IMG/VR virus record: IMGVR_UViG_3300024262_006558
Location: 124,001 to 188,000 of that record
Length of the DNA: 64,000 nucleotides
Strand: one strand, 5' to 3'
Shown: piece by piece, positions 4,100 through 50,132 of the stretch
Layout of the letters: each line of letters starts with the position of its first letter
Position numbering within the stretch: position 1 is the stretch's first letter
Notes under the pieces: model-generated
Database searches by the model: none
What the model saw: only the letters and a program-made list of their open reading frames with translations
Told to the model about the DNA's origin: nothing
Translations under genes and position numbers: made by a program

Positions 4100-4166
4100 T
4101 TATGAAACAATTAATTATTATTTTCGTTAAAGATAAAAAGTAATTACAATAAAAAATTATATAACT

Positions 4167-4535
4167 ATGAAAAGTATAAAACCAGGATCAGTCTATGTAG
4201 CAGGATCAATTCATGGAACAAAAGATCAAGAGATTGTGTTCATGGACAAGCAGACTAACAGGCAATTCCATGAAGAAAAGGCTGGCTTAGAATTACCCGA
4301 CTATTTCTTTGAAACTATAGATGTTGATCCTGATGATTATGCTGTGACTCAAGATGGAACCTCAAATGAGGAATTGTTGAAGATTTTAATCGATAGAACT
4401 GAAATCCTTAATGAGAATGTTGAGTGTTCTGAAAACACTGATGCTATCTATCACATGCAACAAGCTCTTGACGCGTTCAGAAGCAGAACTTCTGATAGAA
4501 GATCACGTGGAGTACAAAGCACTACTGTGGCTTAA
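4167..4535 (+). CDS. Tad1-like anti-defence (immune-signal sponge) protein
   Basis: DGTSNEELLKILIDR...CSENTDAIYHMQQALDAFRSRTSDRRSRGVQST aligns by eye with the Tad1 helical hairpin (G...LLEIVRDRL...[33 protein letters not shown]). Confidence 0.72.
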   Translation: MKSIKPGSVYVAGSIHGTKDQEIVFMDKQTNRQFHEEKAGLELPDYFFETIDVDPDDYAVTQDGTSNEELLKILIDRTEILNENVECSENTDAIYHMQQALDAFRSRTSDRRSRGVQSTTVA

Positions 4536-4569
4536 TATCCACATTTCACCTCAAGCAAGGTATGGTATT

Positions 4570-4696: not shown

Positions 4697-5974
4697 ATGG
4701 CGGAAGTTGTAGAAAAAACAGAAACCACACAAGAAGGTCAAAATACTGTTAAGACACCTGCTCAGGTGTTGGAAGCTTTGGAAGGGAACAAATTTAATAT
4801 ATATTTCTTCTCCCCAGGCATAGACGGACCTAGTGGTGGAATGGGCGTGTTATTTAAACAAGCTTTAATACTTAAAGAGGCTGGATATAATGTAACAATA
4901 TTATATCAACCAACAGTTGATAAAAGAGCTACAGCTCAATTTAGACAAGCTGCTGCTCAGCAAGGTAAGACGGATGATCAAACAATCATTTTCTTTAAAC
5001 ATAATCCAAGATGGATGGAGTTTAGTCTTTTTGAAACCGTAGAGAATGAAAAAGGAGTTAAAGAAGAAAGAAGTATTGTAGATTTCATCCCATTAGGTGA
5101 AGGGACTATGAGATTCAGCGATGGGACAGTTGAGGAAGCTCAAAACCTAAACCTTAACACTGAAGATTTCTTAATCATACCTGAGGGTTTCCCAAACATC
5201 ATGCAGGAAACAATGCATGCTCCTTGTAAAAGAATTGTACTGGCTCAAAGTTGGATTTATATCCTTAATGCTTTAGCTCCAGGGCAAAAATGGAATACGT
5301 TTGGTATCACTGATGCTATATCTGTTTCAGACGGAATTACAGAATATCTATCTTCAATAATGCCTCAAGTAAAAGTGAAGCAATACTCACAAAGCATTAA
5401 TAGAGAAATATTTAATGCACCAGATAATCTTAGTGATAAATTCCCTATGATAGCTTACTCAGCAGGTAGAGGGCAAGATTCTGAAATGAAGATTAACAAC
5501 GTCATTAGAAACTTTCAAGAGTGGTATCCACAATACAAATTTTTCAGATTCATGAAGTTGAATGATCTTTCTCGAAAAGAGTATGCTGAAAGACTTAAAA
5601 GCTGTTGTATTGCATTATACACAGATGATATTGCTGGATTTGGAACATTACCTTTAGAGGCGATGGCTAGCGGAACTCACGTAGTAGGATGGACTCCGTT
5701 TGGAGGAAAAGAATACATTAACAAAGCTGAAGGAGAAGAATTACACAACGGATTCTGGGCTAATAATGGGGATGTTTTCAACTTATCCGAAGTGTTAGGT
5801 GTCGCTGTTGACAAATGGGTTAACGGAGAGCTGGATGGAGAAGAGCTTCAGGAAGCATATGATAAAACTCTTAGTAGATATACTGATGAGAAAGAAAACT
5901 CAAGAATTTTAGATCTTTATAACGAATACAAAACTGAAAGAATAAATGAAATTAAAGGACTTCAAGCAAAGTAA
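4697..5974 (+). CDS. GT-B (GT4-like) glycosyltransferase
   Basis: PSGGMGVLFKQALILKEAGYNV N-terminal motif, IIPE, and C-terminal GFGTLPLEAMASGTHVVG. Confidence 0.85.
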   Translation: MAEVVEKTETTQEGQNTVKTPAQVLEALEGNKFNIYFFSPGIDGPSGGMGVLFKQALILKEAGYNVTILYQPTVDKRATAQFRQAAAQQGKTDDQTIIFFKHNPRWMEFSLFETVENEKGVKEERSIVDFIPLGEGTMRFSDGTVEEAQNLNLNTEDFLIIPEGFPNIMQETMHAPCKRIVLAQSWIYILNALAPGQKWNTFGITDAISVSDGITEYLSSIMPQVKVKQYSQSINREIFNAPDNLSDKFPMIAYSAGRGQDSEMKINNVIRNFQEWYPQYKFFRFMKLNDLSRKEYAERLKSCCIALYTDDIAGFGTLPLEAMASGTHVVGWTPFGGKEYINKAEGEELHNGFWANNGDVFNLSEVLGVAVDKWVNGELDGEELQEAYDKTLSRYTDEKENSRILDLYNEYKTERINEIKGLQAK

Positions 5975-6896
5975 TATCCTTGTAGGATTATACATTGACG
6001 AACAGGCTATTCAAAATGATAAGCAGTTCAACAACACAATATACAGCGTTACTAAACAAAAAGGTGTCCAGCCAGACTTAATCGTTTTTCATAGCGGTTT
6101 AGGTAAGGATGAACTTAAGCAAGTTGAAAATACTCTTAAAGACCCAAAGGCTACCTATGTTAAAACTAACGCTTCAGGAGCAAGAGAAGAAAAAGAGGAT
6201 AGTATAGAAAGTGGTGAATCTATTAACTACAAGTTAGTCGACACTAAATCTAAGTATTTTGCAGAACTCTTCAATGAGTTATTTTCTTACGCTCTTGATA
6301 ATGAATACGAATTTTTTTCAATAATGGAGCAAGAAGATGTTTTTGCGCTTCACTGGTTTAAGTATGTTCAAAAATATGCTGACGAGAAAAAAGATGTGGG
6401 AGTATTTGCTCCACTTATGAGACATACCGTAAATTCAATATTCCAAGGGATCATTAATGAAATTCCATGGGTTGAAGGTATTGCTGAAGAAGCTGGTGTT
6501 ACAGATAGCAACATTCTTTTGAAAGCTGAGACTGCAATCAATATACTAGGTTGCGCGTTCAGAGTCAGTGAATTAGTTGAACATCTACCTGAGGGAGAAA
6601 ATGGAGGTTATACACCTATGAAAGAAAGCATGAAGCTAGTTAATGCTTATGAATTCTTTTTAAGAATCATCTATGATGCTATTAAGATCTACACAATTCC
6701 TAGAAATGGATATGAGCTTAACTTGATAATCAAAAGTGAGCACAACCCGCTTTCATCAAAGATACCAAGTAACATTACCCAGATTCCAGCGGAAAAGGGT
6801 GGAATTACACAACAAGAAGCTAAATTTTACATTGACCTTGCCCGTAAAGAGTACTTTTTTCCAGAGGATAGGAATATCGTCTTTGAAGGTGCATAA
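5946..6896 (+). CDS. GT-A (GT2-like) glycosyltransferase, divergent
   Basis: TIYSVTKQ, FN, EFFSIMEQED (DxD position), YEFFLRI..IYTIP pattern of the GT-A fold; overlaps the GT4 gene. Confidence 0.6.
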   Translation: MKLKDFKQSNILVGLYIDEQAIQNDKQFNNTIYSVTKQKGVQPDLIVFHSGLGKDELKQVENTLKDPKATYVKTNASGAREEKEDSIESGESINYKLVDTKSKYFAELFNELFSYALDNEYEFFSIMEQEDVFALHWFKYVQKYADEKKDVGVFAPLMRHTVNSIFQGIINEIPWVEGIAEEAGVTDSNILLKAETAINILGCAFRVSELVEHLPEGENGGYTPMKESMKLVNAYEFFLRIIYDAIKIYTIPRNGYELNLIIKSEHNPLSSKIPSNITQIPAEKGGITQQEAKFYIDLARKEYFFPEDRNIVFEGA

Positions 6897-6910
6897 ACAT
6901 AACGAGCATA

Positions 6911-7783
6911 ATGGGAAATAATAAAGATTCAGAAAAACTAAAGCACTTCATAGAAGATGATTTTAGTTTTTCGGATTCCCAAAAGGTTTATTGGACAAAG
7001 CAAGAAGAAGATGCTGTAGTGGAATACTTATGGCTTGATGAAACTTGGTTAAACAATAAAATTAGATGGGAATACGAAGAGGCAACTAAAACAAGTAGGG
7101 ATCCAGATTTGGATTTTATTTTCACTTTTGAAAATTTAAGCAAAGACGCAAGTCGACCTGAAAATAAATTAGTTAAAGATAAGATTTTTAGAGATAAATT
7201 AGAGAAGCCTTTATCTAAACTTGTGGAGAACATAGTTTTTAGATACAAACTTTTTAGAGGGGATATAGATGTAAAAACATTGCAAATAGATTCAATGTCT
7301 TTTATTCTAACTAAATTTGCTAATTTCAAACCCTCACAAAACAATAAGTCTTACTCTTATTTCGGAACCATAGTAAAGCATTACTTAATTGGTGAGAAAA
7401 AAGATAACCACAAGCACCAGACGTCTAATTGTGACTACGAAAATCACAAAGAAGAAGTTAACGCTTTGAGAAGTTATGAGCTTGGAGATGAGAATCATTT
7501 AGATGAGTCCTCTAAACTTTTTAAATATGTGGTTGACGAAATGAAAAGAGAATTAGAGAAAACAAGCCTATCTGATAATGATAGAAATGTTGGCCATGCT
7601 ATTATCAATATATTTGAAAATCATGAGAACTTCCTATCAAAAGATTCATATAGCAAAAACATATTGTATCAACTTATTAAAGAATATACAAGTTTGCAAA
7701 CTAAGGATATAACTTATTCCTTAAGTCGATTTAAAGTTCTTTACAAAGTCATCAAACAGAACTTCATTAGAGATAGCAAATAA
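6911..7783 (+). CDS. Phage late-transcription sigma factor (T4 gp55-like, region 2)
   Basis: KLVENIVFRY...LTKFANFKPSQNNKSYSYFGTIVKHYLI resembles the sigma region 2 motif of gp55-like factors; lies just before the virion operons. Confidence 0.7.
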   Translation: MGNNKDSEKLKHFIEDDFSFSDSQKVYWTKQEEDAVVEYLWLDETWLNNKIRWEYEEATKTSRDPDLDFIFTFENLSKDASRPENKLVKDKIFRDKLEKPLSKLVENIVFRYKLFRGDIDVKTLQIDSMSFILTKFANFKPSQNNKSYSYFGTIVKHYLIGEKKDNHKHQTSNCDYENHKEEVNALRSYELGDENHLDESSKLFKYVVDEMKRELEKTSLSDNDRNVGHAIINIFENHENFLSKDSYSKNILYQLIKEYTSLQTKDITYSLSRFKVLYKVIKQNFIRDSK

Positions 7784-7801
7784 TAAGTTTTTTTGCTATT
7801 C

Positions 7802-7808
7802 TATTTAT
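7802..7808 (+). promoter_or_regulatory. Putative late promoter TATTTAT
   Basis: Motif recurs on the coding strand upstream of virion operons. Confidence 0.6.
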
Positions 7809-7828
7809 TAATAAACAACTGAATAGCT

Positions 7829-8281
7829 ATGTCTGAAGAAAAGAAAAGCATACCTAACATATCCAAAGATGTGTATATCGAAATGTTAAATGAGATATAC
7901 ACTAAAATTTCCGAGGAAAGAGATATGTCAATAGATAGGTATAGATATCAGGATGAACAGATGCAGAATGCTGATGATTTTATCCTACAAGGAAAGAATG
8001 CGATTTCTTTCCTTAACCACGCATCGAATAGAACTGATGCTTTATTTGGTATAAGTAAAGAATTAAAGTCTATTGTATACAAAGATGGTAGCGATGACGC
8101 TAACACTCCAGGAGGATCAGCTATGAGCGACGATAAAAGAAGAGCTTTAGCTGATATAGTTAAGCAATCTCAAACTTCAGTAGATAACAGTGATGACATC
8201 GAACATGATGAAGACCTTATAAATGACGTTCCTCTTGATAGAGATGAAATAGATTTAGACTCAGAAGAAGACGATAAGTAA
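7829..8281 (+). CDS. Hypothetical helical protein with acidic C-terminus
   Basis: 150-aa ORF, TAATG-coupled to the next gene. Confidence 0.6.
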   Translation: MSEEKKSIPNISKDVYIEMLNEIYTKISEERDMSIDRYRYQDEQMQNADDFILQGKNAISFLNHASNRTDALFGISKELKSIVYKDGSDDANTPGGSAMSDDKRRALADIVKQSQTSVDNSDDIEHDEDLINDVPLDRDEIDLDSEEDDK

Positions 8282-9522
8282 TGGCATTTCAACCTACTGT
8301 AAACGCAACTCTTACAGCGTCTCAAAATGAATTAACGTCTAAGTTAGGGTCTATGAAAAACCTTCTTAGCCTAAGTTTTCGCGTCCCTAAAAGCATACCT
8401 AAAGATCAACAAGTATCCACTTTTGATTATCTAATAAAAATCATCAAACTTTTAGGGTATGATCCTCAGATATTTTTCCTACAATTCATAGAACTGGTAT
8501 TTGATGAGGCTGGAGATTTTTTAGAGCAACAAGTGTTTACCGCTATTGGAGCGGCTCTTGATAGCAAGGGAATAAAAATATCAGAAAGCAAAAGTAATGC
8601 TGACGTAATTAGAGATTCGGTTCCAGCAACATTTTTACAGCCTTTTAAAGAAGCTATGGCTAAGCAATTAGTTATGATGGTATTCGGACCAAAGGAAAGC
8701 GCGGGATCAATTGCTCTAGTTCCAGATGCGAATTTAAGAGAAAAAGCTTTTGCTGATGCAATATGCGGCAGCAACATGTTTACCTTATCAAATAATCCAA
8801 CTGTTAGAAATGAAGATATTGAATACAATAGAGTCAGGTTAAAACAGCAATTGGAGAAGGGGGAAGTTCAATTTGAAATAAATTGTCAGAGCGTTAAGAT
8901 AAAATTACCAGAAGACCCTTTAGTTTTTTTTGGATCTGGAGGACCAAATAGTCAACAAAGTAGACCTATAACACCAGCTCAAAGTATAGCATCTGTTATT
9001 AACCATGTTTCTAATCAGGTGCAGAATATTAATAATGAGAAAAATGCAAAATCAGCAGGTAAGTCTTTTTCAGAAATATTAGTAGGTAAATTAATGAGCT
9101 ATATTAGTAGTATGGTCTTTCCTTATGTAGGACCTATATTTGACTTTCTATCTACGCAGCCTGAGACATCTCTATTAACTCCAGAGAATGTTTTATACAA
9201 TAATTGCGCTATAGAATCTAATCCGAGAAATAGTGAACAAAAATCATTCTCTTCTAGCTTAATTAACAATTTATATATCGCTCTAGTTAGGATATTATTA
9301 ATTTTTGTAATAAGAGAATTTAAGAAATTAGTCAGTAATTATTTTGCTACTACAGCTAGAGAAAAAGCTAGAAGAAAAGCAGAAAAGTTAAGAGCTAAAT
9401 TTGCTCTAATGACTGGAGGCTCAGCAAATGCTGCAGAGTCTGCTAGAAAAGCCTCTAGGTATGCAAAGGCAGCTAGATCACTGCAGAGCATTTTAGGTGG
9501 AAACACTTCTGGTATACCTTAA
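8281..9522 (+). CDS. Hypothetical protein, probably virion/baseplate associated
   Basis: 413-aa ORF in the operon leading to the gp5-like gene. Confidence 0.55.
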   Translation: MAFQPTVNATLTASQNELTSKLGSMKNLLSLSFRVPKSIPKDQQVSTFDYLIKIIKLLGYDPQIFFLQFIELVFDEAGDFLEQQVFTAIGAALDSKGIKISESKSNADVIRDSVPATFLQPFKEAMAKQLVMMVFGPKESAGSIALVPDANLREKAFADAICGSNMFTLSNNPTVRNEDIEYNRVRLKQQLEKGEVQFEINCQSVKIKLPEDPLVFFGSGGPNSQQSRPITPAQSIASVINHVSNQVQNINNEKNAKSAGKSFSEILVGKLMSYISSMVFPYVGPIFDFLSTQPETSLLTPENVLYNNCAIESNPRNSEQKSFSSSLINNLYIALVRILLIFVIREFKKLVSNYFATTAREKARRKAEKLRAKFALMTGGSANAAESARKASRYAKAARSLQSILGGNTSGIP

Positions 9523-9535
9523 AAATTAAATTTAA

Positions 9536-9542
9536 TATTTAT
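9536..9542 (+). promoter_or_regulatory. Putative late promoter TATTTAT, 4 nt before ATG
   Basis: TATTTAT-ATAC-ATG. Confidence 0.5.
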
Positions 9543-9546
9543 ATAC

Positions 9547-9963
9547 ATGGGGATAATCACAATAAAGCCAGAAGCTAATAAGTCTGAAGAAGTAGCGGAT
9601 TTTCTTTTATTTTTAATAAGAGAGAATAGAATTGAATTTCCAAAACTATCTTTATTTCAATTGCTTTTAGCAAAAACAAGACCTGGACTGAGTTCTGAAC
9701 TTATATCATCCAGTATCATTTCTAGATTCGATGAAGCAGGTATACCTAAAGGGCCTTTAGTTGGAGGAGCTCCTAATGTAATGGAAAACTTCACTAAAAT
9801 TATTGCTGAGGAATTTGTATCAGCTATACAAGATGATATGAGGGTGGACATTGCGGTCGACACTGGAATCACAGTACAAGCAAGCGGGGCTAATGCGGGT
9901 GGGCCAGTAGTTGCTATAGGTTCATCAATTGCACCTCACACAGGAATAGGGGTAGCGAGTTAA
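9547..9963 (+). CDS. Hypothetical baseplate-region protein
   Basis: 138 aa with Gly-rich C-terminus (GANAGGPV); upstream of the spike gene. Confidence 0.5.
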   Translation: MGIITIKPEANKSEEVADFLLFLIRENRIEFPKLSLFQLLLAKTRPGLSSELISSSIISRFDEAGIPKGPLVGGAPNVMENFTKIIAEEFVSAIQDDMRVDIAVDTGITVQASGANAGGPVVAIGSSIAPHTGIGVAS

Positions 9964-10202
9964 TGAAAAGGCCAAGTAAAGAAATATTAAAAGAGATGCA
10001 AGAATTAGCCGACAAGTTTCATAAACTTGAGGGTGAAGTGGAAATTCTTCTAGGTATGGGTGAGGATGTGGAGGATGTGTCTAGCCATAAAAATCAGGAA
10101 ACAATTGCAGGGATTATCGATGCTGTAGACATTGTTATGAAGGAAATAGAAGATCTAGAAGAAGAGTATAACAAAAGAGCAAGAGAGCTAAAAGGTGTAT
10201 AA
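9963..10202 (+). CDS. Small coiled-coil hypothetical protein
   Basis: 79 aa; TAATG coupling on both sides. Confidence 0.6.
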   Translation: MKRPSKEILKEMQELADKFHKLEGEVEILLGMGEDVEDVSSHKNQETIAGIIDAVDIVMKEIEDLEEEYNKRARELKGV

Positions 10203-11179
10203 TGGGATTTTTCGGACAATCAAATAGTTTATTAAACATGAATGGCCAAGGGCAAGGATTGTCCTCTGATGGAAATCAGGCAGCTAGAAATGTATACCCA
10301 GCCATTGTAATTAGTAATCAAGATCCAGCGGGTCAAAATAGGATTGTAGCCAGAATAGTATCTTTAGATCAAAATGGTGAAATAAACGGAGGTAGAGATA
10401 GAGACAAGAGAGATGAAGATCTCCCTTTCTGCAATCCAATGGTTCCTGAATTTTTGCATGTTCGCCCATTAGAAGGTGAAATGGTAATGATTATGCTTGA
10501 GAATCCAAGCGACAATTCTGCCCCTAGATATTGGATGGGCCCAGTTATCACCTCTCAACTAAAGCTAAAATACCAAGCGTATAAAGATGCAAATGACTCT
10601 TTTAAAAGAACAACTTTTTTTGGAGATAAGAATTTACAATCAAACCCAGACGCTTTTGATTTGGTGCCGCAACAAGCGGATATAGCAATTCAAGGCAGGG
10701 ATGATGCTGATTTAATTTTAAGACCTAGAACCGCTATACTTACAGCTGGTAAATTTGAGCCTGGAACTTTAGACCCAAATATAACTACGCCCTGCAGCAT
10801 TACAATCAAACAGATAGATGCAGTTGTTAATGAAAAAGATGAAGAAATAGCTCCTAGATTTTCACAATCAAATATATATTCTACTAGTATTAATTTATGG
10901 TCTCCAAATGGTAAATTTAGAAACAAAGCTGTTGGTGAAAAATTAGAATCCGCTAATGACGCTCTTGAATATTTAGGGGAACTAGCTAATACTCTACACC
11001 CAGTGCCATTCGGAGATGAATTAGTGAGATTGCTTGACGTAATAGTTAGAGTCATGCTAAATCATGTACACCACCCTCAAACAGCTCTTCTTGAAACAGA
11101 AGACTCTAACACTCTATCAGAATACACTTTAGATGGAAGGCTTCAAGAATTGCTTTCTAAATTTGTTAGAGTCAATTAA
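10202..11179 (+). CDS. Baseplate central spike/hub (gp5/VgrG/gpV OB-fold)
   Basis: AIVISNQDPAGQNRIVARI...RPLEGEMVMI...RYWMGP OB-fold motif, QGR, and C-terminal HVHHP. Confidence 0.8.
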   Translation: MGFFGQSNSLLNMNGQGQGLSSDGNQAARNVYPAIVISNQDPAGQNRIVARIVSLDQNGEINGGRDRDKRDEDLPFCNPMVPEFLHVRPLEGEMVMIMLENPSDNSAPRYWMGPVITSQLKLKYQAYKDANDSFKRTTFFGDKNLQSNPDAFDLVPQQADIAIQGRDDADLILRPRTAILTAGKFEPGTLDPNITTPCSITIKQIDAVVNEKDEEIAPRFSQSNIYSTSINLWSPNGKFRNKAVGEKLESANDALEYLGELANTLHPVPFGDELVRLLDVIVRVMLNHVHHPQTALLETEDSNTLSEYTLDGRLQELLSKFVRVN

Positions 11180-13634: not shown

Positions 13635-13710
13635 TCAAATAAAAAATGCCTCTACCATGCTCTTTATAATAGAAGTGAAATTTCTTATATTATTAAAAAT
13701 AATTGCTCAA

Positions 13711-13717
13711 TATTTAT
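13711..13717 (+). promoter_or_regulatory. Putative late promoter TATTTAT (divergent pair, right)
   Basis: 17 nt upstream of ATG 13735. Confidence 0.6.
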
Positions 13718-13734
13718 TAAGAAAAGAGTTTGTT

Positions 13735-14127
13735 ATGTCATCTATAAGTATAAGATTTCCATTTATCAAAACAATTGATGGCGGAGTTTTTAAACCAACT
13801 AAAACTACCCAAGAATCAATTAGGGCTAACCTACTTTCTCTGTTAACAACAAAGAAGGGTCAAAGAGTGATGAGGCAAAGGTTGTATTCACCTTTATACG
13901 ATTACCTATGGGAGCCTATGGATGACTTTACAAAAAAAGAAATGAGACATGCTCTTGAAGAGAAAATAGCTGAATTTATACCAGATATTTCTCTTGAAGA
14001 AATTGACATTGAATACATTAACGAACAAAACCTTGTTAGAGTAACAGTTGTTTACACAATAGATATCTTAGGTGATATTGGAGATCAAGCGACTGTATTC
14101 ATTCCAAGAGAAGAACCTGAATATTAA
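13735..14127 (+). CDS. Baseplate wedge protein gp25-like (GPW/gp25)
   Basis: SIRANLLSLLTTKKGQRVM...LYDYLWEPMD...IAEFIPDI. True start is probably MSSISIRFPF. Confidence 0.9.
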   Translation: MSSISIRFPFIKTIDGGVFKPTKTTQESIRANLLSLLTTKKGQRVMRQRLYSPLYDYLWEPMDDFTKKEMRHALEEKIAEFIPDISLEEIDIEYINEQNLVRVTVVYTIDILGDIGDQATVFIPREEPEY

Positions 14128-14132
14128 TAACT

Positions 14133-15989
14133 ATGGCGTCAGCACCTCAAATAAATTATTTAAGTAGAGACTTTGAAAGCATAAGCAAAGATCTTGAAGC
14201 TTTTTTGAAAGCATTTTTTCCTGATGATTGGAAAGATTTTAGCGTAGCATCAGCTGGTATGGCTTTGGTCGACATCAACGCTTATGTAACTGATCTACTT
14301 TCTTTTATTGCAGACAAGAAATATAATGAAAACTATTTAGACGGAGTCCAAGAAAGAAAGTCCGTCTATAGAATGGCAAAAACATTTGGTTTTAAACCTC
14401 CTGGGTTCAGACCAGCATCTACAGTAGTAGATATATTCGTAGAAGTTCCTCCAGCGGGAGATGTTCCAGACCCAGCATATATACCGCTTTACAGACAAGG
14501 GGTTCAAGTGAGAGGTGGTGGTCAAACTTTTGAAACAGCTTTCGAAATAGATTTCTCAGACGATTTCAATGAAGAAGGAGTAGCTAACCGTACTATAGAG
14601 CCTATCTTTAATGCAAATCAAGATATCTTAAGATACAGAATTGTAAAGAGAGAGAAAGTTGAAGCTGGTATTACTAAAATTTATTCACAAGAAATTTCAG
14701 AAGATGAAGCTATACCTTTTTATAGCCTAGTATTACCTGAAAGAAATGTTCTTGAAATTCTTAGTGTAATAGTAATTCCTCAAGTGGGAATTACTAACAC
14801 TCCAACCTTTCAACAATTCAATGATCCTAGCTTACTTTATTATGAAGTAGAAGAATTGCCTCAAGATAAGATATTTGTAAGAGACAATGATTTACCTACA
14901 GTTAATGGAGTGGCTTCTGGAAGATTTTTAGAAGTACCTAAGAGGTTTTCTAAAAACTTTCTATCTGACGGCTCTTGCAAACTCCAATTTGGAGGAGGGT
15001 CTTTTAGTCAAGACTCTTACCAACAATATTTAAATGACATCACTAATATAACTGGCGCAACTTCCACTGTAAATATAAAAGATGTATTAGACAACACCGC
15101 TTTGGGTAAAACTGTCCCACCTAACTCTACAGTTTTCATACAATATAGATCAGGTGGAGGTTTACTTAGCAACGTGGGGTCAGGTATCCTTCAGGAAGTG
15201 GGAAAAATAAACGCTATTATAGACGGGACTAACGCAACTCAAAACCAAAAAGTAATCACATCAACTTCTGCTAATAATCCAATACCAGCAGTGGGGGGAG
15301 AGGGTTTACCTTCTGTAGAAGATATAAAAAACAATATAGCTGGAGCTTTTTCTGCTCAGAAAAGAGCTGTGACATTAAGGGATTATATTTCTTTTGTAAA
15401 ACAAATGCCTAACCAATACGGAGGTATTTTCAAATGTTTTGGCAAAGTTCAAGATAACAAAGTTTTAATATATGTAATCACTAGAGATGGTAATGGAAAG
15501 TTAAGATCTCAGTCTACCAGTGTTGTTAAAGCAAATATTCAAGAATGGCTAACTCAATATAGAATGATCAATGATTTTGTTGAAATCAATGATGGTGAAG
15601 TGATAAATCTTCAAATTGAGGCAGATTTATTTGTAGACAAAACTTTTAATCCTAATGAGGTAAAGTTAAACGCTATTAATGTAATTAAAAATTTCCTTGA
15701 TGTCAACAAGACCGATATGAATGAGACTGTATACATATCTCAAATCACTGATATTTTAAGAGATGTTCCTGGAGTTATAAATGTGGTAGAATTAAGATTC
15801 TATAACATGGAAGGTGGAGCCTATTCTAGCACACTTACTAGTCAAGCGACTGGTATTAAAAACAAAATAGACGGAACCAGTAGCTTTAGGACAGAAATAC
15901 AGCCTATAGATAATGCTATATTTGGAACCCCTATTTCTATGTTTGAAATTAAATTTCCTGAAAAAGATATAAAAGTTAGGACAGCGTAA
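14133..15989 (+). CDS. Baseplate wedge protein gp6/baseplate-J-like
   Basis: YLSRDFESI, MAKTFGFKP, LQFGGG, QYRSGGG, AVGGEG, AQKRAVTLRDY and VPGVINV. Confidence 0.92.
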   Translation: MASAPQINYLSRDFESISKDLEAFLKAFFPDDWKDFSVASAGMALVDINAYVTDLLSFIADKKYNENYLDGVQERKSVYRMAKTFGFKPPGFRPASTVVDIFVEVPPAGDVPDPAYIPLYRQGVQVRGGGQTFETAFEIDFSDDFNEEGVANRTIEPIFNANQDILRYRIVKREKVEAGITKIYSQEISEDEAIPFYSLVLPERNVLEILSVIVIPQVGITNTPTFQQFNDPSLLYYEVEELPQDKIFVRDNDLPTVNGVASGRFLEVPKRFSKNFLSDGSCKLQFGGGSFSQDSYQQYLNDITNITGATSTVNIKDVLDNTALGKTVPPNSTVFIQYRSGGGLLSNVGSGILQEVGKINAIIDGTNATQNQKVITSTSANNPIPAVGGEGLPSVEDIKNNIAGAFSAQKRAVTLRDYISFVKQMPNQYGGIFKCFGKVQDNKVLIYVITRDGNGKLRSQSTSVVKANIQEWLTQYRMINDFVEINDGEVINLQIEADLFVDKTFNPNEVKLNAINVIKNFLDVNKTDMNETVYISQITDILRDVPGVINVVELRFYNMEGGAYSSTLTSQATGIKNKIDGTSSFRTEIQPIDNAIFGTPISMFEIKFPEKDIKVRTA

Positions 15990-43694: not shown

Positions 43695-44024
43695 ATGCAA
43701 AAGGAATTTATTTTATGTGCTGCAATAGATTATGACGGTACCATTGTCTGCGGACACAGACATGGTGACTGCTATGATGTACTAAAATCATTGATAGGAG
43801 AGATTGATGCAGATAAACTTCCAGCTAGAGACAAGCAAGGATTCTTAACTTCTGAAAACAGATACGTTGGACGAGAGGAAGCTTGGGTTATAGCAAAAGA
43901 GAGAAAGCAGGTCGTTCATGGCCTTAAGGCAAGCGATCGAGATAATGATGAATTAGATGAATTAGACAAGCATTTAGGCATAAAGAAGCCTGTGTCTATT
44001 CTTATATCAGAAAATTTATATTAA
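43695..44024 (+). CDS. Conserved phage hypothetical protein
   Basis: ILCAAI..GHRHGDC..QGFLTSENRYVGREEA..LISENLY motif set. Confidence 0.65.
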   Translation: MQKEFILCAAIDYDGTIVCGHRHGDCYDVLKSLIGEIDADKLPARDKQGFLTSENRYVGREEAWVIAKERKQVVHGLKASDRDNDELDELDKHLGIKKPVSILISENLY

Positions 44025-44540: not shown

Positions 44541-44993
44541 CTACTCAATAATACAACATGTAGGTTTAATAGTAAGAGTGATATAGCGCACGTCACTACT
44601 TGAATAATCTAATTCGCCAAAATTAACCTTAACACTCTCAACTACAATCACAAAGGTTTCAATAACTACCCCAGTCGGATCAAGGCTTGACATTCTAATA
44701 GTAAACATTTCTAACTCACCATTCAATTTCCTATCTTTACAGTAATCAATTAAATTAATCATAGATGAGCTTGTTGATATTCCATGCCCATATAAATCAA
44801 TAATATCTATGCTCATCTCTTCCCAAGACATATTTTGCAAATTGTAGTGAGGTAAATCAGCTCTCTGAACAGCAAACTCTGGAATATTAAAATGTTCATC
44901 AAATCTTAATGAGAATCTATTCCTTCTCATTGGCTCTTCTATAGGAGTAGCGATCAATTTTTTATTATATGCGTGATAAAACTTTTTCCTCAT
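44541..44993 (-). CDS. MRKKFYHAY-leader tail-tube-like protein (gp19-like, internally shortened)
   Basis: EPMRRNRF, W, LDPTGVVIETF and VNFGELDYSSSDVRYITLTI match T4-gp19-type tube proteins. Confidence 0.75.
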   Translation of the reverse strand: MRKKFYHAYNKKLIATPIEEPMRRNRFSLRFDEHFNIPEFAVQRADLPHYNLQNMSWEEMSIDIIDLYGHGISTSSSMINLIDYCKDRKLNGELEMFTIRMSSLDPTGVVIETFVIVVESVKVNFGELDYSSSDVRYITLTIKPTCCIIE

Positions 44994-45007: not shown

Positions 45008-45868
45008 CTAAAACCAGCCCCATCTTCTTCTTGATCTATTCTTTGTGCGTCTCCATTGCTGAGTTTCTGCAACAGGCTCATCTTCGGGAACTTCTTCAGG
45101 TTCAGAAATCATCTCAGGCTCTTCTTGAACATCTGGCTGCACAGGCTCGACAGGCTCTACAGGCTCTGGATTAATCATATTGACAGGCTCTTGTGGAGTT
45201 GTTTTAGGCGCCTCTGGTGATACTTCTGGATTATCTGGAGTAACATTACTCGCTGGCTCTCCAGGGTTCTCATCTGTTACTGTAGGGGTTTTCTTAGGTA
45301 CTCTTGTAGGTTCTTGACTAAACTGATTCTGATCTTCTCTAGACTCTTCTTCATCTGGAGTAGGAATAGGTTTGTCAGTTAAGTTTGATTGGTAATTTTT
45401 AGCAATGTTTGGTTTGTATGTAGCTTCTACACTTTTGATATCTTTATCATTAGGGTTGTATCCCGTAATGTTATCGCTAAAGAATCTGTCAGTAAACCAC
45501 ATTCCTTTAATTCTATCTGCTCTAAACATTCTCCAGTCGTTTTCAGCTTCAGCGCTTCTAACTCCTGTTTTTTTGGCTGCTTTTTCAGATTGTCCAATAA
45601 CATGTAACCCTCTAACGACTTTATTACCTTTAGAGTTAGTTCCCATAACCACTGGCCTTACAACACGATACTTCTGTACGGGCATTTCTTCGCCTTTATA
45701 AAGAATTCCTATTTCCCTACCTTGCTCAATTGCCTGCTTCATCATATCAGCGCTAAAAGCCACTCTCTCACCACTCTTTGCAAGTAGCTTAGTTTTAGTG
45801 GCCATATCAGCTTCACTGATGATTCCAGCTAGTAATTGTGATCTTTTCTTAAAGGACTCTGATAGCAT
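45008..45868 (-). CDS. WYL-domain-like protein with Pro/Glu-rich tail
   Basis: AIEQGREIGILY...RVVRPVVMG...WRMFRADRI; PVE/PE-rich low-complexity C-terminus. Confidence 0.6.
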   Translation of the reverse strand: MLSESFKKRSQLLAGIISEADMATKTKLLAKSGERVAFSADMMKQAIEQGREIGILYKGEEMPVQKYRVVRPVVMGTNSKGNKVVRGLHVIGQSEKAAKKTGVRSAEAENDWRMFRADRIKGMWFTDRFFSDNITGYNPNDKDIKSVEATYKPNIAKNYQSNLTDKPIPTPDEEESREDQNQFSQEPTRVPKKTPTVTDENPGEPASNVTPDNPEVSPEAPKTTPQEPVNMINPEPVEPVEPVQPDVQEEPEMISEPEEVPEDEPVAETQQWRRTKNRSRRRWGWF

Positions 45869-45923: not shown

Positions 45924-46118
45924 ATGAGAAAGAAGTTTTACCACGCATTTAAAAAACATAAAATAATATTTATGTCACCTGGAATATACACCAGGGAAAT
46001 AGATAGGTCTTTTGTGATGGTGTCAGGAGCAACTAATTCAAATTTTATAGCAGGTATTGATCCAGCCGTTAAGTCTCCAAGAATTGATATGCTAAAGGTT
46101 TTTGGATCAGCATCATGA
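45924..46118 (+). CDS. MRKKFYHAF-leader peptide carrying a tail-sheath N-terminal motif
   Basis: IFMSPGIYTREIDRSFV equals the SPGVYxREID N-terminal arm of gp18-type sheath proteins. Confidence 0.7.
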   Translation: MRKKFYHAFKKHKIIFMSPGIYTREIDRSFVMVSGATNSNFIAGIDPAVKSPRIDMLKVFGSAS

Positions 46119-46267
46119 GAAAACGGTTCTATCACGCATATAAAAAGAAAAGTATGGCTCAAAAGTTTTTAGAGCTTAGTAATATTATTCATGAGAGAGC
46201 TGTGAGAGGTTCAGCGAACTTTATAATAACTAGCACGGCTATGGCAAATAAAATAAAAAAAATATGA
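46115..46267 (+). CDS. MRKRFYHAY-leader peptide (50 aa, not in ORF track) carrying a major-capsid-like segment
   Basis: MRKRFYHAYKKKSMAQKFLELSNIIHERAVRGSANFIITSTAMANKIKKI; ATGA overlaps at both ends; cf. gp23-type I...T.RG.gNFII.S. Confidence 0.7.
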   Translation: MRKRFYHAYKKKSMAQKFLELSNIIHERAVRGSANFIITSTAMANKIKKI

Positions 46268-46515
46268 GAAAAAACTTCTACCATTCTTATAACGAATTCA
46301 AATACCCTACTGTAGAATTAGGAGAAACTGTTTTTTCGATAATAGATAACTGCGATTATACCATGACCTACACCATGGATACATGGAGTGATTCATGCTC
46401 AGGTCTAGATAGTGACATATCCAGCATTGAGTACAGGCTTAAGACAGCTGAAGAAACTATCGATAGATTACTTGTCGAGATGAAAGAGATGAAAGATCAA
46501 ATGCAAAAACCATAA
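46264..46515 (+). CDS. MRKNFYHSY-leader protein with C-terminal coiled coil
   Basis: 83 aa, ATGA-coupled to the previous family member. Confidence 0.7.
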   Translation: MRKNFYHSYNEFKYPTVELGETVFSIIDNCDYTMTYTMDTWSDSCSGLDSDISSIEYRLKTAEETIDRLLVEMKEMKDQMQKP

Positions 46516-46569
46516 AAGAGTTTAATTTCAATTATAATCTTATTAGATTTTACATAAATGATAGAAACT

Positions 46570-46773
46570 ATGGCGGAGAATGAGAACAAGAACATTCTAG
46601 ATCTTTTGCTCGATATTAAAGAACTAACGGATACAATTCAACCAGATGCAGAAAAAACCCTCAAAGGTAATAAAACGGCTGGCATTAGATTGAGAAAGCA
46701 GATGCAAGAAATAAAAAGACTTTGTCAAGATGTGAGAGACAAAGTTCAAGTTAGTAAAAATGTTACAGCTTAA
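46570..46773 (+). CDS. Hc1-like histone H1 family protein
   Basis: DAEKTLKGNKTAGIRLRKQMQEIK...R matches the GNKAAG.R.RK core of Hc1/Bacteroidota histone-H1-like proteins. Confidence 0.8.
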   Translation: MAENENKNILDLLLDIKELTDTIQPDAEKTLKGNKTAGIRLRKQMQEIKRLCQDVRDKVQVSKNVTA

Positions 46774-47174: not shown

Positions 47175-50132
47175 ATGGCTAAGAAAAACAAATATAAAGA
47201 TAGCGTAGTTCATATAAAGAAATTAAAGACAAATTATAGACTAACTTATGATTTTCTCAAATCTCTTACAGAATATATAAAATCATTTCCTAAAGAACAT
47301 TGGTCTATTCACAAAGAGCAGGTCATGGTGGGCGGGGAACTTAAACAGCAATGGTCCAGAGATATATCTGAATTCAAAATGGTTGATGTATTAGCGTTCC
47401 TAGTCGACAACTCAATCCCATTCAAATTTAGTAAATCCATAACAGAAAGAGAATTAAATGTTTTACGTAAAGAATATTTAGATCGACAGAATCGATTGAA
47501 AGATGCGCTTAGGGAGAAGTTAGATGGCATTGACATAAAAGGTATGGATTTCAGCTTTATGAAAATACAGCCTTATGAGTACCAACAACAAGCTGTTCGA
47601 TTCTTTGAGCTTAATGGAGGTATAGGGCTATTAGGGGATGCTCCAGGTGTAGGCAAGGAAATGCCTTTAGACACACCTATCCCCACTCCAGAAGGTTGGA
47701 AAACAATGGGGGATATGACGGTTGGTCAAAAGGTTTTTTCTAGAGATGGTGAAGTTTATAAAGTGAGAGGAGTGTATCCTCAAGGATCTAAAGATGTTTA
47801 TAAAATAACCTTCAATGATGGTAGCTCTACTAAATGTGGTTTAGATCACATTTGGACTGTTAGAGATAAAAATAGAAAGCGCAGAAATAAAGGGTGGACT
47901 ACAAAAACGATAGGTGATCTATTGGATAGCGGTTTAAAATATAACTTAGACGCCTCTAGAAAGTTATCTGGTAGAAAAGCTGCTCTCAAATGGGAGATAC
48001 CCACAACTAAACCAGTAAATTATAATAAGAAAAACTTATCAATAGACCCTTATATTTTAGGAGCTTTGATTGGAGATGGAAGTTTGACGGGATCATGTCC
48101 AGCTGTTTCCATACCAAATTTCCAAAAAGAAATCAAAGAAGAGATGGTTTCTAGATTAGATGAAGGGTATCATATGAGAAAGAATGATTATCCAAATTGC
48201 CCACAATATTACATCTCTCAAAAAGGATGGGGTGGACAAAGCAAAAAAAACAAATATCAACAAGAGGTTCTAAGTTTAAAATTAAACGTAAAATCTAGGG
48301 ATAAATTTATACCAAAAACCTATTTATTGGGATCTATAGATCAAAGAATTGATCTACTGAAAGGATTAATGGATAGTGATGGTAGTTGCGATAAAAATAG
48401 ATCAAATTATCACACTACATCTAAACGTTTGTCAATGGACGTTGTAGAATTAGTTCAGTCGCTAGGAGGCGTTGCAAAAGTTAACATCTATGATAGGTCT
48501 GCTGAAGGGAAGCCGACTGAATACAGAGTTAGGGTTAATGTTAATTTTTGCCCTTTTAATTTATCAGAAAAATCTAAACAGTGGAATCCAATAAAAACTG
48601 TTGAATCTAAATTAATAGAATCAATTGAAAAAGAGGCCTCTGAACAGCAGCAGTGTATTTCCGTAGATTCTCCAGACAACACTTACTTAACTGAAAGTTA
48701 TATTGTGACACACAATACCTGCTCGGCTTTTGCATATGCAGCTAAGCATCAGTATAAAACATTGATAATTTGTCCAGCCTCACTTGCTTTGAACTGGAAA
48801 AATGAAATAGTTAAGTTTACAAATGAAAAGGCTCACGTATACAAATACAAACCCACTAAAAAAAGCGGAAAGGTAAACTACGCAAAAGAAGACTCACTTT
48901 TCCATGTAATAAACTACGAATCACTTGATACCTATTTTAAATTTGAATACTCACATAAGTGTAGTAATTCAAATTGTAAATATGAAGAAGTATCTTTGGT
49001 TAAAAAATTTAAAGAGTGCCCTAGTTGCTTTAGTCCAAAAAGCGTTAAAAGCAGAAAAAAAGAACTTCTTGCTTTCGAAGCTAAAGATGGAAGCTTTATT
49101 AATATAGATGATTATGATTTAGTGGTTCTAGATGAGGCTCACTATATCAAGAACGATCAGGCTGAGAGAACTAAGTTATGCATTAAAGCATTAGGAGATA
49201 TCCCTAGAAAACTATTAGTTACTGGTACAGCAATAAAAAGTAAACCTATTGAGTTTTTCACTCTTGTTAACTTTCTATTCCCTGAGGAGTGGAAGAGTAG
49301 GCATCACTTTGGGGTAAGATATTGTGCTGGACATGAATCCAACTTTGGCTGGGATTATAATGGAGCCTCACATATACATGAGTTGTATGAGAGAATGTCA
49401 CCTTTTACTTTAAGAAGATTGAAGCAAGATGTATTAAGTCACTTGCCTCCAAAGACAAGATGGAATATACCAATTCAACTCACTCCAGCAGAAGCTAGAG
49501 AATACAAGAAAATAGAGCAGGAAACTATTACAATACTTTCCAATGGTGAAGCTATTGAAAAAAATCATCTTACGGTTCTTTTGGATTTAAAAAGCTTTAT
49601 TGCTGATATAAAATTAGATAGAGCCCTATCTCAAGTGCAAGACATTGTTGAAGGTGGTGAGAAAGTTGTTCTTATGTCTGAGTTTAGAAAATCAGCAGAG
49701 GGAGTTAAAGAGCATTTTGGAAAAAGCTGTGTAATGGTTCATGGTGGAGTTAGTAAAGAAGAACGAGATAATGCTGTTCACGCCTTCATGACGGACCCTA
49801 AGATAAAAGTGTTCAGCGGAACTATTATGGCTGCAGGAGTAGGGCTTACATTAACCTCATCTAGCACATTAGGATTTCTAGGATCAGCTTGGACTCCAGC
49901 AGATATGACTCAAGCGGAGGATCGTGTACACAGAGCGTCCACCACCTCAGATAAAGTTCATATTATAAAATGGATTTGTGAAGACACGATCGATGAAGAT
50001 ATTGAAGCCCTCTTAGAAGAGAAAGGGAAAATAGTAAACAAAGCCTTAGATAATACAAGTTCAATTGAAAGCGCTGAGGTTCTAAGTGGAAATATACAAA
50101 ATCAAATAATCGCTAGATTACTGAATGGATAG
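47175..50132 (+). CDS. SNF2/SWI2-family helicase with intein and Zn-ribbon insert
   Basis: PYEYQQQAV, GDAPGVGK[intein]T, IICPASL, INYE, LDEAHYIKN, VTGT, RRLKQDV, GVGLTL and QAEDRVHR. Confidence 0.93.
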   Translation: MAKKNKYKDSVVHIKKLKTNYRLTYDFLKSLTEYIKSFPKEHWSIHKEQVMVGGELKQQWSRDISEFKMVDVLAFLVDNSIPFKFSKSITERELNVLRKEYLDRQNRLKDALREKLDGIDIKGMDFSFMKIQPYEYQQQAVRFFELNGGIGLLGDAPGVGKEMPLDTPIPTPEGWKTMGDMTVGQKVFSRDGEVYKVRGVYPQGSKDVYKITFNDGSSTKCGLDHIWTVRDKNRKRRNKGWTTKTIGDLLDSGLKYNLDASRKLSGRKAALKWEIPTTKPVNYNKKNLSIDPYILGALIGDGSLTGSCPAVSIPNFQKEIKEEMVSRLDEGYHMRKNDYPNCPQYYISQKGWGGQSKKNKYQQEVLSLKLNVKSRDKFIPKTYLLGSIDQRIDLLKGLMDSDGSCDKNRSNYHTTSKRLSMDVVELVQSLGGVAKVNIYDRSAEGKPTEYRVRVNVNFCPFNLSEKSKQWNPIKTVESKLIESIEKEASEQQQCISVDSPDNTYLTESYIVTHNTCSAFAYAAKHQYKTLIICPASLALNWKNEIVKFTNEKAHVYKYKPTKKSGKVNYAKEDSLFHVINYESLDTYFKFEYSHKCSNSNCKYEEVSLVKKFKECPSCFSPKSVKSRKKELLAFEAKDGSFINIDDYDLVVLDEAHYIKNDQAERTKLCIKALGDIPRKLLVTGTAIKSKPIEFFTLVNFLFPEEWKSRHHFGVRYCAGHESNFGWDYNGASHIHELYERMSPFTLRRLKQDVLSHLPPKTRWNIPIQLTPAEAREYKKIEQETITILSNGEAIEKNHLTVLLDLKSFIADIKLDRALSQVQDIVEGGEKVVLMSEFRKSAEGVKEHFGKSCVMVHGGVSKEERDNAVHAFMTDPKIKVFSGTIMAAGVGLTLTSSSTLGFLGSAWTPADMTQAEDRVHRASTTSDKVHIIKWICEDTIDEDIEALLEEKGKIVNKALDNTSSIESAEVLSGNIQNQIIARLLNG
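47658..48716 (+). mobile_element. Class-3-type intein with LAGLIDADG endonuclease in the helicase P-loop (353 aa)
   Basis: Inserted at GK|T; starts EMPLDTPIPTPEGW; DHIW, QCISV and IVTHN give the WCT signature; LGALIGDGS and LKGLMDSDGS. Confidence 0.9.

Follow-up and report, generated by a model that had tools for sequence, protein, structure and literature searches.

The gp19-type tail tube proteins of contractile-tailed phages (Pfam PF06841, phrog_4542; T4 gp19, PDB 5w5f) share a beta-sandwich plus helix fold, carry a long beta2-beta3 hairpin which is the contact between stacked rings (bioRxiv 10.64898/2026.01.04.697583), and are treated as pure building blocks. Tube-fold paralogs that start or end the tube, such as T4 gp48/gp54 and the tube terminator, and Afp5/Pvc5 of extracellular contractile injection systems, form one ring rather than a polymer and are ancient, universal parts encoded in tail or baseplate modules. 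Two further systems are relevant here: the internal proteins of T-even phages, a diverse set of defence proteins that share only a roughly 10-residue N-terminal capsid targeting sequence (PMC3012670) and are clustered and fast-evolving; and the phage proteins that mimic or titrate targets of bacterial immune sensors, for example of the Avs families, which sense tube, capsid and other core proteins. Bacterial sensors are now known to recognise nearly all core virion proteins, the tube hairpin among them, and the one published tube sensor found, Avs16, is reported to grip the hairpin itself (bioRxiv 10.64898/2026.01.04.697583).

The locus studied lies in a window of 64,000 nucleotides (the whole stretch of DNA analysed, positions 124,001 to 188,000 of IMG/VR record IMGVR_UViG_3300024262_006558), and the identical protein is on record from the 494,080-bp JGI metagenome contig Ga0210003_1000004, which IMG/VR lists as a 388.6-kb viral genome. 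The window has 34.5% G+C and carries baseplate wedge genes at 13657-15989, followed by DNA-metabolism genes (primase, SbcCD-like, exonuclease), an endolysin and many genes with no family, indicating a huge contractile-tailed phage. Its nearest sequenced relatives, judged by the gp6-like baseplate protein, are the uncultured 484-kb phage LR756508.1, Flavobacterium phage immuto and Microcystis phage Mel-JY01, all at about 28-30% identity.

A predicted tail-tube fold with a shortened P-W loop

The ORF at 44541-44993 on the minus strand is complete, with an ATG at 44993, a stop at 44541-44543 and 150 codons between them. Only 8 residues (H-Y-N-L-Q-N-M-S) separate the conserved P48 and W57 (44823-44852, minus strand). 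The earlier note had described the product as a tail-tube paralog in which the stretch of roughly 20 residues between the conserved P and W, which forms the polymerisation hairpin and typically ends in a G-K/R..W motif, was reduced to 8 residues, and this observation is confirmed. The word paralog remains unverified for this genome, since the retrieved relatives of the short protein, of the sheath fragment described below and of the LR756508/immuto tube did not include its own full-length tube or sheath gene.

Homology to tail tubes is far beyond chance, with phmmer hits down to E 1e-19 in a library of 1.8 billion proteins and a match at E 7e-20 to a profile of 162-aa true tubes, split into two pieces at the gap. 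The family profile phrog_4542 ('tail tube protein') matched at E 5e-8, but only over residues 86-147 in the C-terminal half; the protein has no Pfam hit, and PF06841 was reached weakly by 2 of 50 family members. A profile search of PDB sequences returned only chance hits, and megablast of the locus against 50,697 phage records gave no match, nor did tblastn of this protein and of a short tube from another phage locus (L009), although tblastn is too insensitive here, having missed even the true tubes. The 162-aa true tubes are more distant relatives and form a very large group of more than 6,000 entries, many of them scored as PF06841, and in immuto this protein is the annotated tube gene, directly after the sheath gene.

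Alignment with these true tubes, including that of immuto, shows that 15-17 residues are missing exactly between P and W, where true tubes read E-I-P-Y-M-N-x-x-x-Y-V-A-G-R-x-x-W or a G-K version; that the alignment might show the hairpin intact had been set as a test beforehand, and it does not. A second deletion of about six residues lies at residues 88-97 (44703-44732, minus strand) and removes the loop after the helix, E-S-x-T-G-R-x-G-Y-x-x-Y-K-K, which is invariant in both groups of true tubes examined. Identity is 27-32% to true tubes, with one at 21%, and the shared motifs are E-P-K-x-x-N-R-F, L-D-P-T-G, F-G-x-x-D-Y and P-x-x-C-x-L. Among 169 retrieved loci with a tube-family ORF, the P-W spacing is 23 in 149 and 6-8 in 9.

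The structural models agree. AlphaFold, given a 149-sequence alignment, produced a very confident model (pLDDT 93.3, pTM 0.81) in which only residues 1-10 are uncertain (pLDDT about 60) and in which the tube-fold body, a beta-sandwich plus one helix, spans residues 19-150 (44544-44939, minus strand). Between strands 42-45 and 60-65 there is just a tight turn, of 2+2 residues at 50-57, whereas a control model of a true tube (from locus L044) has two 10-residue strands at that place, 43-52 and 55-65, which form the long hairpin. The model matches the T4 tail tube 5w5f_A at Z 12.8 (rmsd 3.9 over 132 residues) and the P1 and KP1 tubes at Z 12.8, with an ESM Atlas TM of 0.78 to gp19-type tubes. The top Foldseek hits are tube chains of AFP, PVC and the T4 baseplate-tube complex (6rao_F and 9qgl_5A, both chains in baseplate entries, and 5iv5_BG), which are baseplate-proximal tube paralogs, and a 175-residue chain of the T4 portal-neck-tail complex (9mkb_AC) scores Z 12.3. 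The fold is therefore certain, but it does not tell main tube from initiator or terminator, all of which match about equally well.

Family distribution and genomic context

The deletion is not private to this gene, as the earlier note might suggest, but is the norm of a whole unannotated family of roughly 130-145-aa homologs, with which the protein groups rather than with true tubes. The phmmer search found 362 cluster representatives at E<0.001, with homology covering residues 19-149, and of the 149 best relatives 138 have 12 or fewer residues between P and W, with a mode of 6. In a tree rooted on the immuto/LR756508-type tubes, 80 of 81 family rows form one clade (SH-aLRT 89) beside true tubes from jumbo-sized contigs, and with the hairpin columns removed the group is still nearly one side of a branch, although resolution inside the family is poor. 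The long branches of the short family were not taken as evidence of fast evolution, because its rows came from a 50%-identity representative set and the true tubes from near-identical top hits, which biases the comparison. Inside the family the loop ranges from recognisably hairpin-like sequences, through degenerate stubs, to full deletion, while the body motifs stay conserved throughout, a pattern expected if the hairpin stopped being needed once this branch left the tube role. N-terminal extensions vary from 0 to 108 residues, and a Pfam search of members with long extensions found no extra domain.

Family members lie mostly among small accessory genes in very different phages: in a 10-kb run of small ORFs (phage contig L006); among small ORFs, a helicase, Mom-like and homing-endonuclease genes and a glycosyltransferase (loci L008-L010); and among small ORFs near the terminase of a 56-kb phage (L174). 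The one exception is L011, an 8-kb contig in which a divergent member (4143-4556) sits between homologs of window genes 9547-9963 and 10202-11179, the latter a spike-like protein, within a block syntenic with window 5946-11179. It lies 2.7 kb from a true 163-aa tube (7244-7759), from which it is separated by a GIY-YIG homing endonuclease gene. L011 is the only 1 of the 169 tube loci to carry both forms and proves that they coexist in one genome. In the cultured relative immuto, profiles of the short family run over all but the last 410 nt of the sequence hit only the true tube (E 2.5e-22; the next hit is E 0.1 or worse).

In the present phage the ORF is not next to a sheath gene, its neighbours being small ORFs and, upstream on the same strand at 45008-45868, a gene for a 286-aa protein with a viral WYL-like domain, a long acidic Pro/Glu-rich tail and a basic Trp-rich C-terminus. 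The WYL assignment rests on a weak profile hit and on WYL proteins among its Atlas structure neighbours. A homolog (29% identity, E 1.5e-5) directly precedes the short tube in L009, so the two genes may form a pair. The earlier note's statement that the gene lies far from the tail module is true as far as the window shows, since the baseplate genes lie at 13657-15989 and the window holds no sheath or tube. Promoter and terminator scans around the gene were at background level, and GC and GC3 match the genome.

The shared N-terminal tag

Residues 1-10 (M-R-K-K-F-Y-H-A-Y-N; 44964-44993, minus strand) lie outside the region homologous to tubes, which starts near residue 17-20 across the family. 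The peptide M-R-K-x-F-Y/F-x-x-Y/F-N, 9-10 residues long, starts four ORFs within 2 kb of the window (44964-44993 on the minus strand, 45924-45953, 46115-46144 and 46264-46293) and marks eight more in a second array 200 kb away on the same contig (locus L090, 9862-11904), giving at least 12 tagged small ORFs. The second array follows a Cas operon at L090 389-6434 (contig positions about 377-383 kb) encoding Cas3 (HD plus helicase), a Cas7fv-like protein, a 327-aa protein and Cas6, with no Cas1/Cas2 seen in the stretch, then a CRISPR array of about 14 repeats with a 66-nt period, and a dense tRNA gene cluster (L090 6700-9860). The first tagged ORF starts within about 3 nt of the end of the last tRNA-like sequence, as it does in a related phage (L172).

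Across 19 copies of the tag, including those of the related phage, codon positions 1 and 2 are conserved, position 3 switches between synonymous codons and nothing upstream is conserved, indicating selection as a peptide and ruling out a DNA or RNA site such as a promoter, operator or repeat. A CRISPR repeat was rejected because the real array has a different repeat with a 66-nt period and the tags are irregularly spaced, and a frameshift slippery site inside the tag was rejected because it is not conserved among the copies. Almost all hits listed in a non-exhaustive metagenome scan for the tag were single chance matches, and only this genome showed several tags per locus. In L172 the array is kept in the same place with all ORFs intact, but identity there is 33-76% (median 59%) against a median of 79% for eleven flanking genes.

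Several of the bodies behind the tag are pieces of other virion proteins. The 64-aa ORF at 45924-46118 (plus strand) has, after the tag, an internal Met and a sheath-type N-terminal arm, S-P-G-I-Y-T-R-E-I-D-R-S-F, comparable to the sheath N-termini of immuto and other relatives (S-P-G-V-F-T-R-E-N-D-L-S-F and similar); the JGI gene call starts at the internal Met, giving 48 aa. Three tagged ORFs are collinear pieces, N-proximal, middle and C-terminal, of a gp23-type major capsid protein: the 50-aa ORF at 46115-46267 (plus strand) and those at L090 10969-11418 and 11490-11708. In pairwise searches against just two capsid proteins the three pieces match Turkey5 residues 65-128 (E 1e-6), Lak residues 510-546 (E 7e-5) and Lak residues 602-637 (E 2e-8), with weak hits to phrog_138 and Pfam Gp23. 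The ORF at 46115-46267 gives the match to the Lak phage capsid-gene ORF at 510-546, besides Turkey5 capsid protein residues 246-264 (E 0.03) and phrog_138 positions 280-318 (E 0.12). These assignments rest on modest E-values, though these agree with one another. A 73-aa ORF at L090 10700-10921 shows a putative resemblance to the N-terminal region of T4 gp23 (motif K-W-x-x-T-G-L-L). The body of the 83-aa tagged ORF at 46264-46515 (plus strand), whose start overlaps the previous stop (ATGA), has no assignment. In three of the four tagged ORFs of the window a second possible start codon (TTG13, ATG17 and ATG14, at 44955-44957, 45972-45974 and 46154-46156) lies just behind the tag, so tagged and untagged forms could both be made.

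Most members of the short-tube family carry no tag. Two other short tubes, P0002 and P0047, share a different one, M-x-x-F-K-F-F, which at least 7 other small ORFs in P0002's phage carry too. In that phage, on the unrelated contig L006 (76-4670 and 8508-8945), M-x-x-F-K-F-F/L thus starts at least eight small ORFs in all, including its own short tube and an ORF with the same K-W-x-x-T-G-L-L motif as a tagged ORF of the present phage.

Interpretation and alternative explanations

The most likely reading, to which a probability of about 0.5 is given, is that the gene encodes a non-polymerising tube mimic with an accessory, probably conflict-related, role; the safest statement is that it is a non-polymerising derivative of the tube protein with an accessory role, and mimicry is the mechanism considered most likely. 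In this view the protein is a stable, monomer-sized copy of the tube body that has lost the two elements most conserved in real tubes, should be unable to extend a tube because the hairpin is the contact between stacked rings, and still presents the rest of the tube surface. It would keep one or more tube surfaces and bind something that normally binds tube protein, which could be a growing tube, another tail part or a host sensor, and cap or titrate it, without being able to pass the stacking contact on. The target could be a competitor's growing tube, the phage's own assembly line or a host sensor. It would belong to an accessory family that has spread among unrelated phages and in which the hairpin is no longer under selection, and the phage appears to run a set of tagged virion-protein mimics that one tag-reading factor handles together. 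The fold, the deletions, the family, the genomic contexts and the tag with its peptide-level conservation are established by the present analysis, whereas the failure to polymerise, any binding partner, the mimic role and the existence of a tag reader are inferred, on the basis of sequence and monomer models alone. The tag and the tube body may also have separate stories, as most family members are untagged.

The earlier note had proposed a non-polymerising mimic acting as a chain terminator for tail assembly or as a monomeric decoy for tube-sensing immunity, and this interpretation is partly supported. A tube-fold protein lacking the hairpin and lying outside the tail genes is supported, and the distribution of the family argues against an essential, universal virion part, but present results do not separate terminator from decoy. 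A bait for the published tube sensor is unlikely, as Avs16 is reported to hold the very hairpin that is missing.

A serious rival, although judged less likely, is a minor structural role as a single hexameric ring that starts the tube on the baseplate hub or ends it, comparable to T4 gp48/gp54/gp3 or Afp5/Pvc5, since such a ring needs to accept a hairpin on only one face. The baseplate-proximal Foldseek hits, the L011 member just upstream of a spike-like gene and near the true tube, and the L009 member 5 kb from homologs of window genes 4697-7783 are consistent with this, but fold scores do not separate the alternatives. In the present genome the homologous block (9547-11179) has no such gene and the ORF lies 34 kb away among DNA-metabolism and small genes. 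Unlike the ancient, universal initiators and terminators, the family is a close offshoot of the main tube, with about 30-40% identity, is sporadic and is missing from the immuto sequence searched, and its N-terminal extensions vary widely. It is less likely still that the tag is a packaging signal like the T4 capsid targeting sequence, by which the tagged proteins would be loaded into the head, injected with the DNA and act at the very start of infection. The pattern is the same, with a short shared N-terminal peptide, unrelated bodies, tandem arrays, one of which follows a tRNA cluster, and faster divergence than the neighbours. However, the leader sequence is unrelated to that of T4, no protease site, scaffold partner or virion data back the analogy (short L/I-x-E-like motifs are too common to count), and nothing explains why injected proteins should be pieces of late structural proteins.

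A decaying, functionless leftover of a duplicated or captured tube gene is very unlikely: although conserved tube elements are lost and neighbours include fragments of other structural genes, the ORF is intact, the model is very confident, hundreds of intact relatives share conserved core motifs, tagged ORFs are kept open in a related phage and GC and GC3 match the genome. Least likely is that this is the phage's only tube protein, building a tube without the hairpin. No other tube gene was found in the window or in the roughly 20 kb seen elsewhere, but these cover only about 17% of the contig, the nearest relatives by baseplate protein all have 162-aa tubes with the hairpin, L011 shows both forms coexisting and the gene is not next to a sheath gene.

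A more speculative possibility, considered unlikely but not excluded, is that this phage, and at least two other phage lineages using a different tag, encode a tagged arsenal of mimics cut from the most conserved parts of virion proteins (a tube body without its hairpin, the sheath's N-terminal arm and three pieces of the capsid protein). One tag-reading factor would deliver or control these together, as baits that blind host sensors of core phage proteins or as dominant-negative caps that spoil the assembly of competing phages. The bodies correspond to conserved parts of the very proteins that such sensors recognise, and phage-encoded look-alikes would be an obvious but so far undescribed kind of countermeasure, or weapon between phages.

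A widespread side branch that keeps the body but lets the polymerisation hairpin decay would mean that this fold has been put to a non-structural use, and the shared tag on small, soluble-looking pieces of tube, sheath and capsid proteins points to an organised system rather than debris.

Other genes of the window

The conserved gene block at window 4697-11179 (425, 316, 290, 150, 413, 138 and 325 aa) is shared with the uncultured phages of L009 and L011, and from N-terminal motifs judged by eye its members look like a family-2 glycosyltransferase, a gp55-like late sigma factor and a spike-like protein. The 138-aa protein at 9547-9963 was examined as a possible second tube-fold protein, but has no such structural neighbours. 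At 47175-50132 (plus strand) an SNF2-type helicase is interrupted after its Walker A motif by an intein-like insert with a LAGLIDADG endonuclease domain, which ends in H-N, although no Cys was seen where the first residue would be expected. A 71-aa protein at 46558-46773 (plus strand) has a precomputed Pfam hit to the histone-like Hc1 family, and a 109-aa protein at 43695-44024 (plus strand) hits T4_Y16D.
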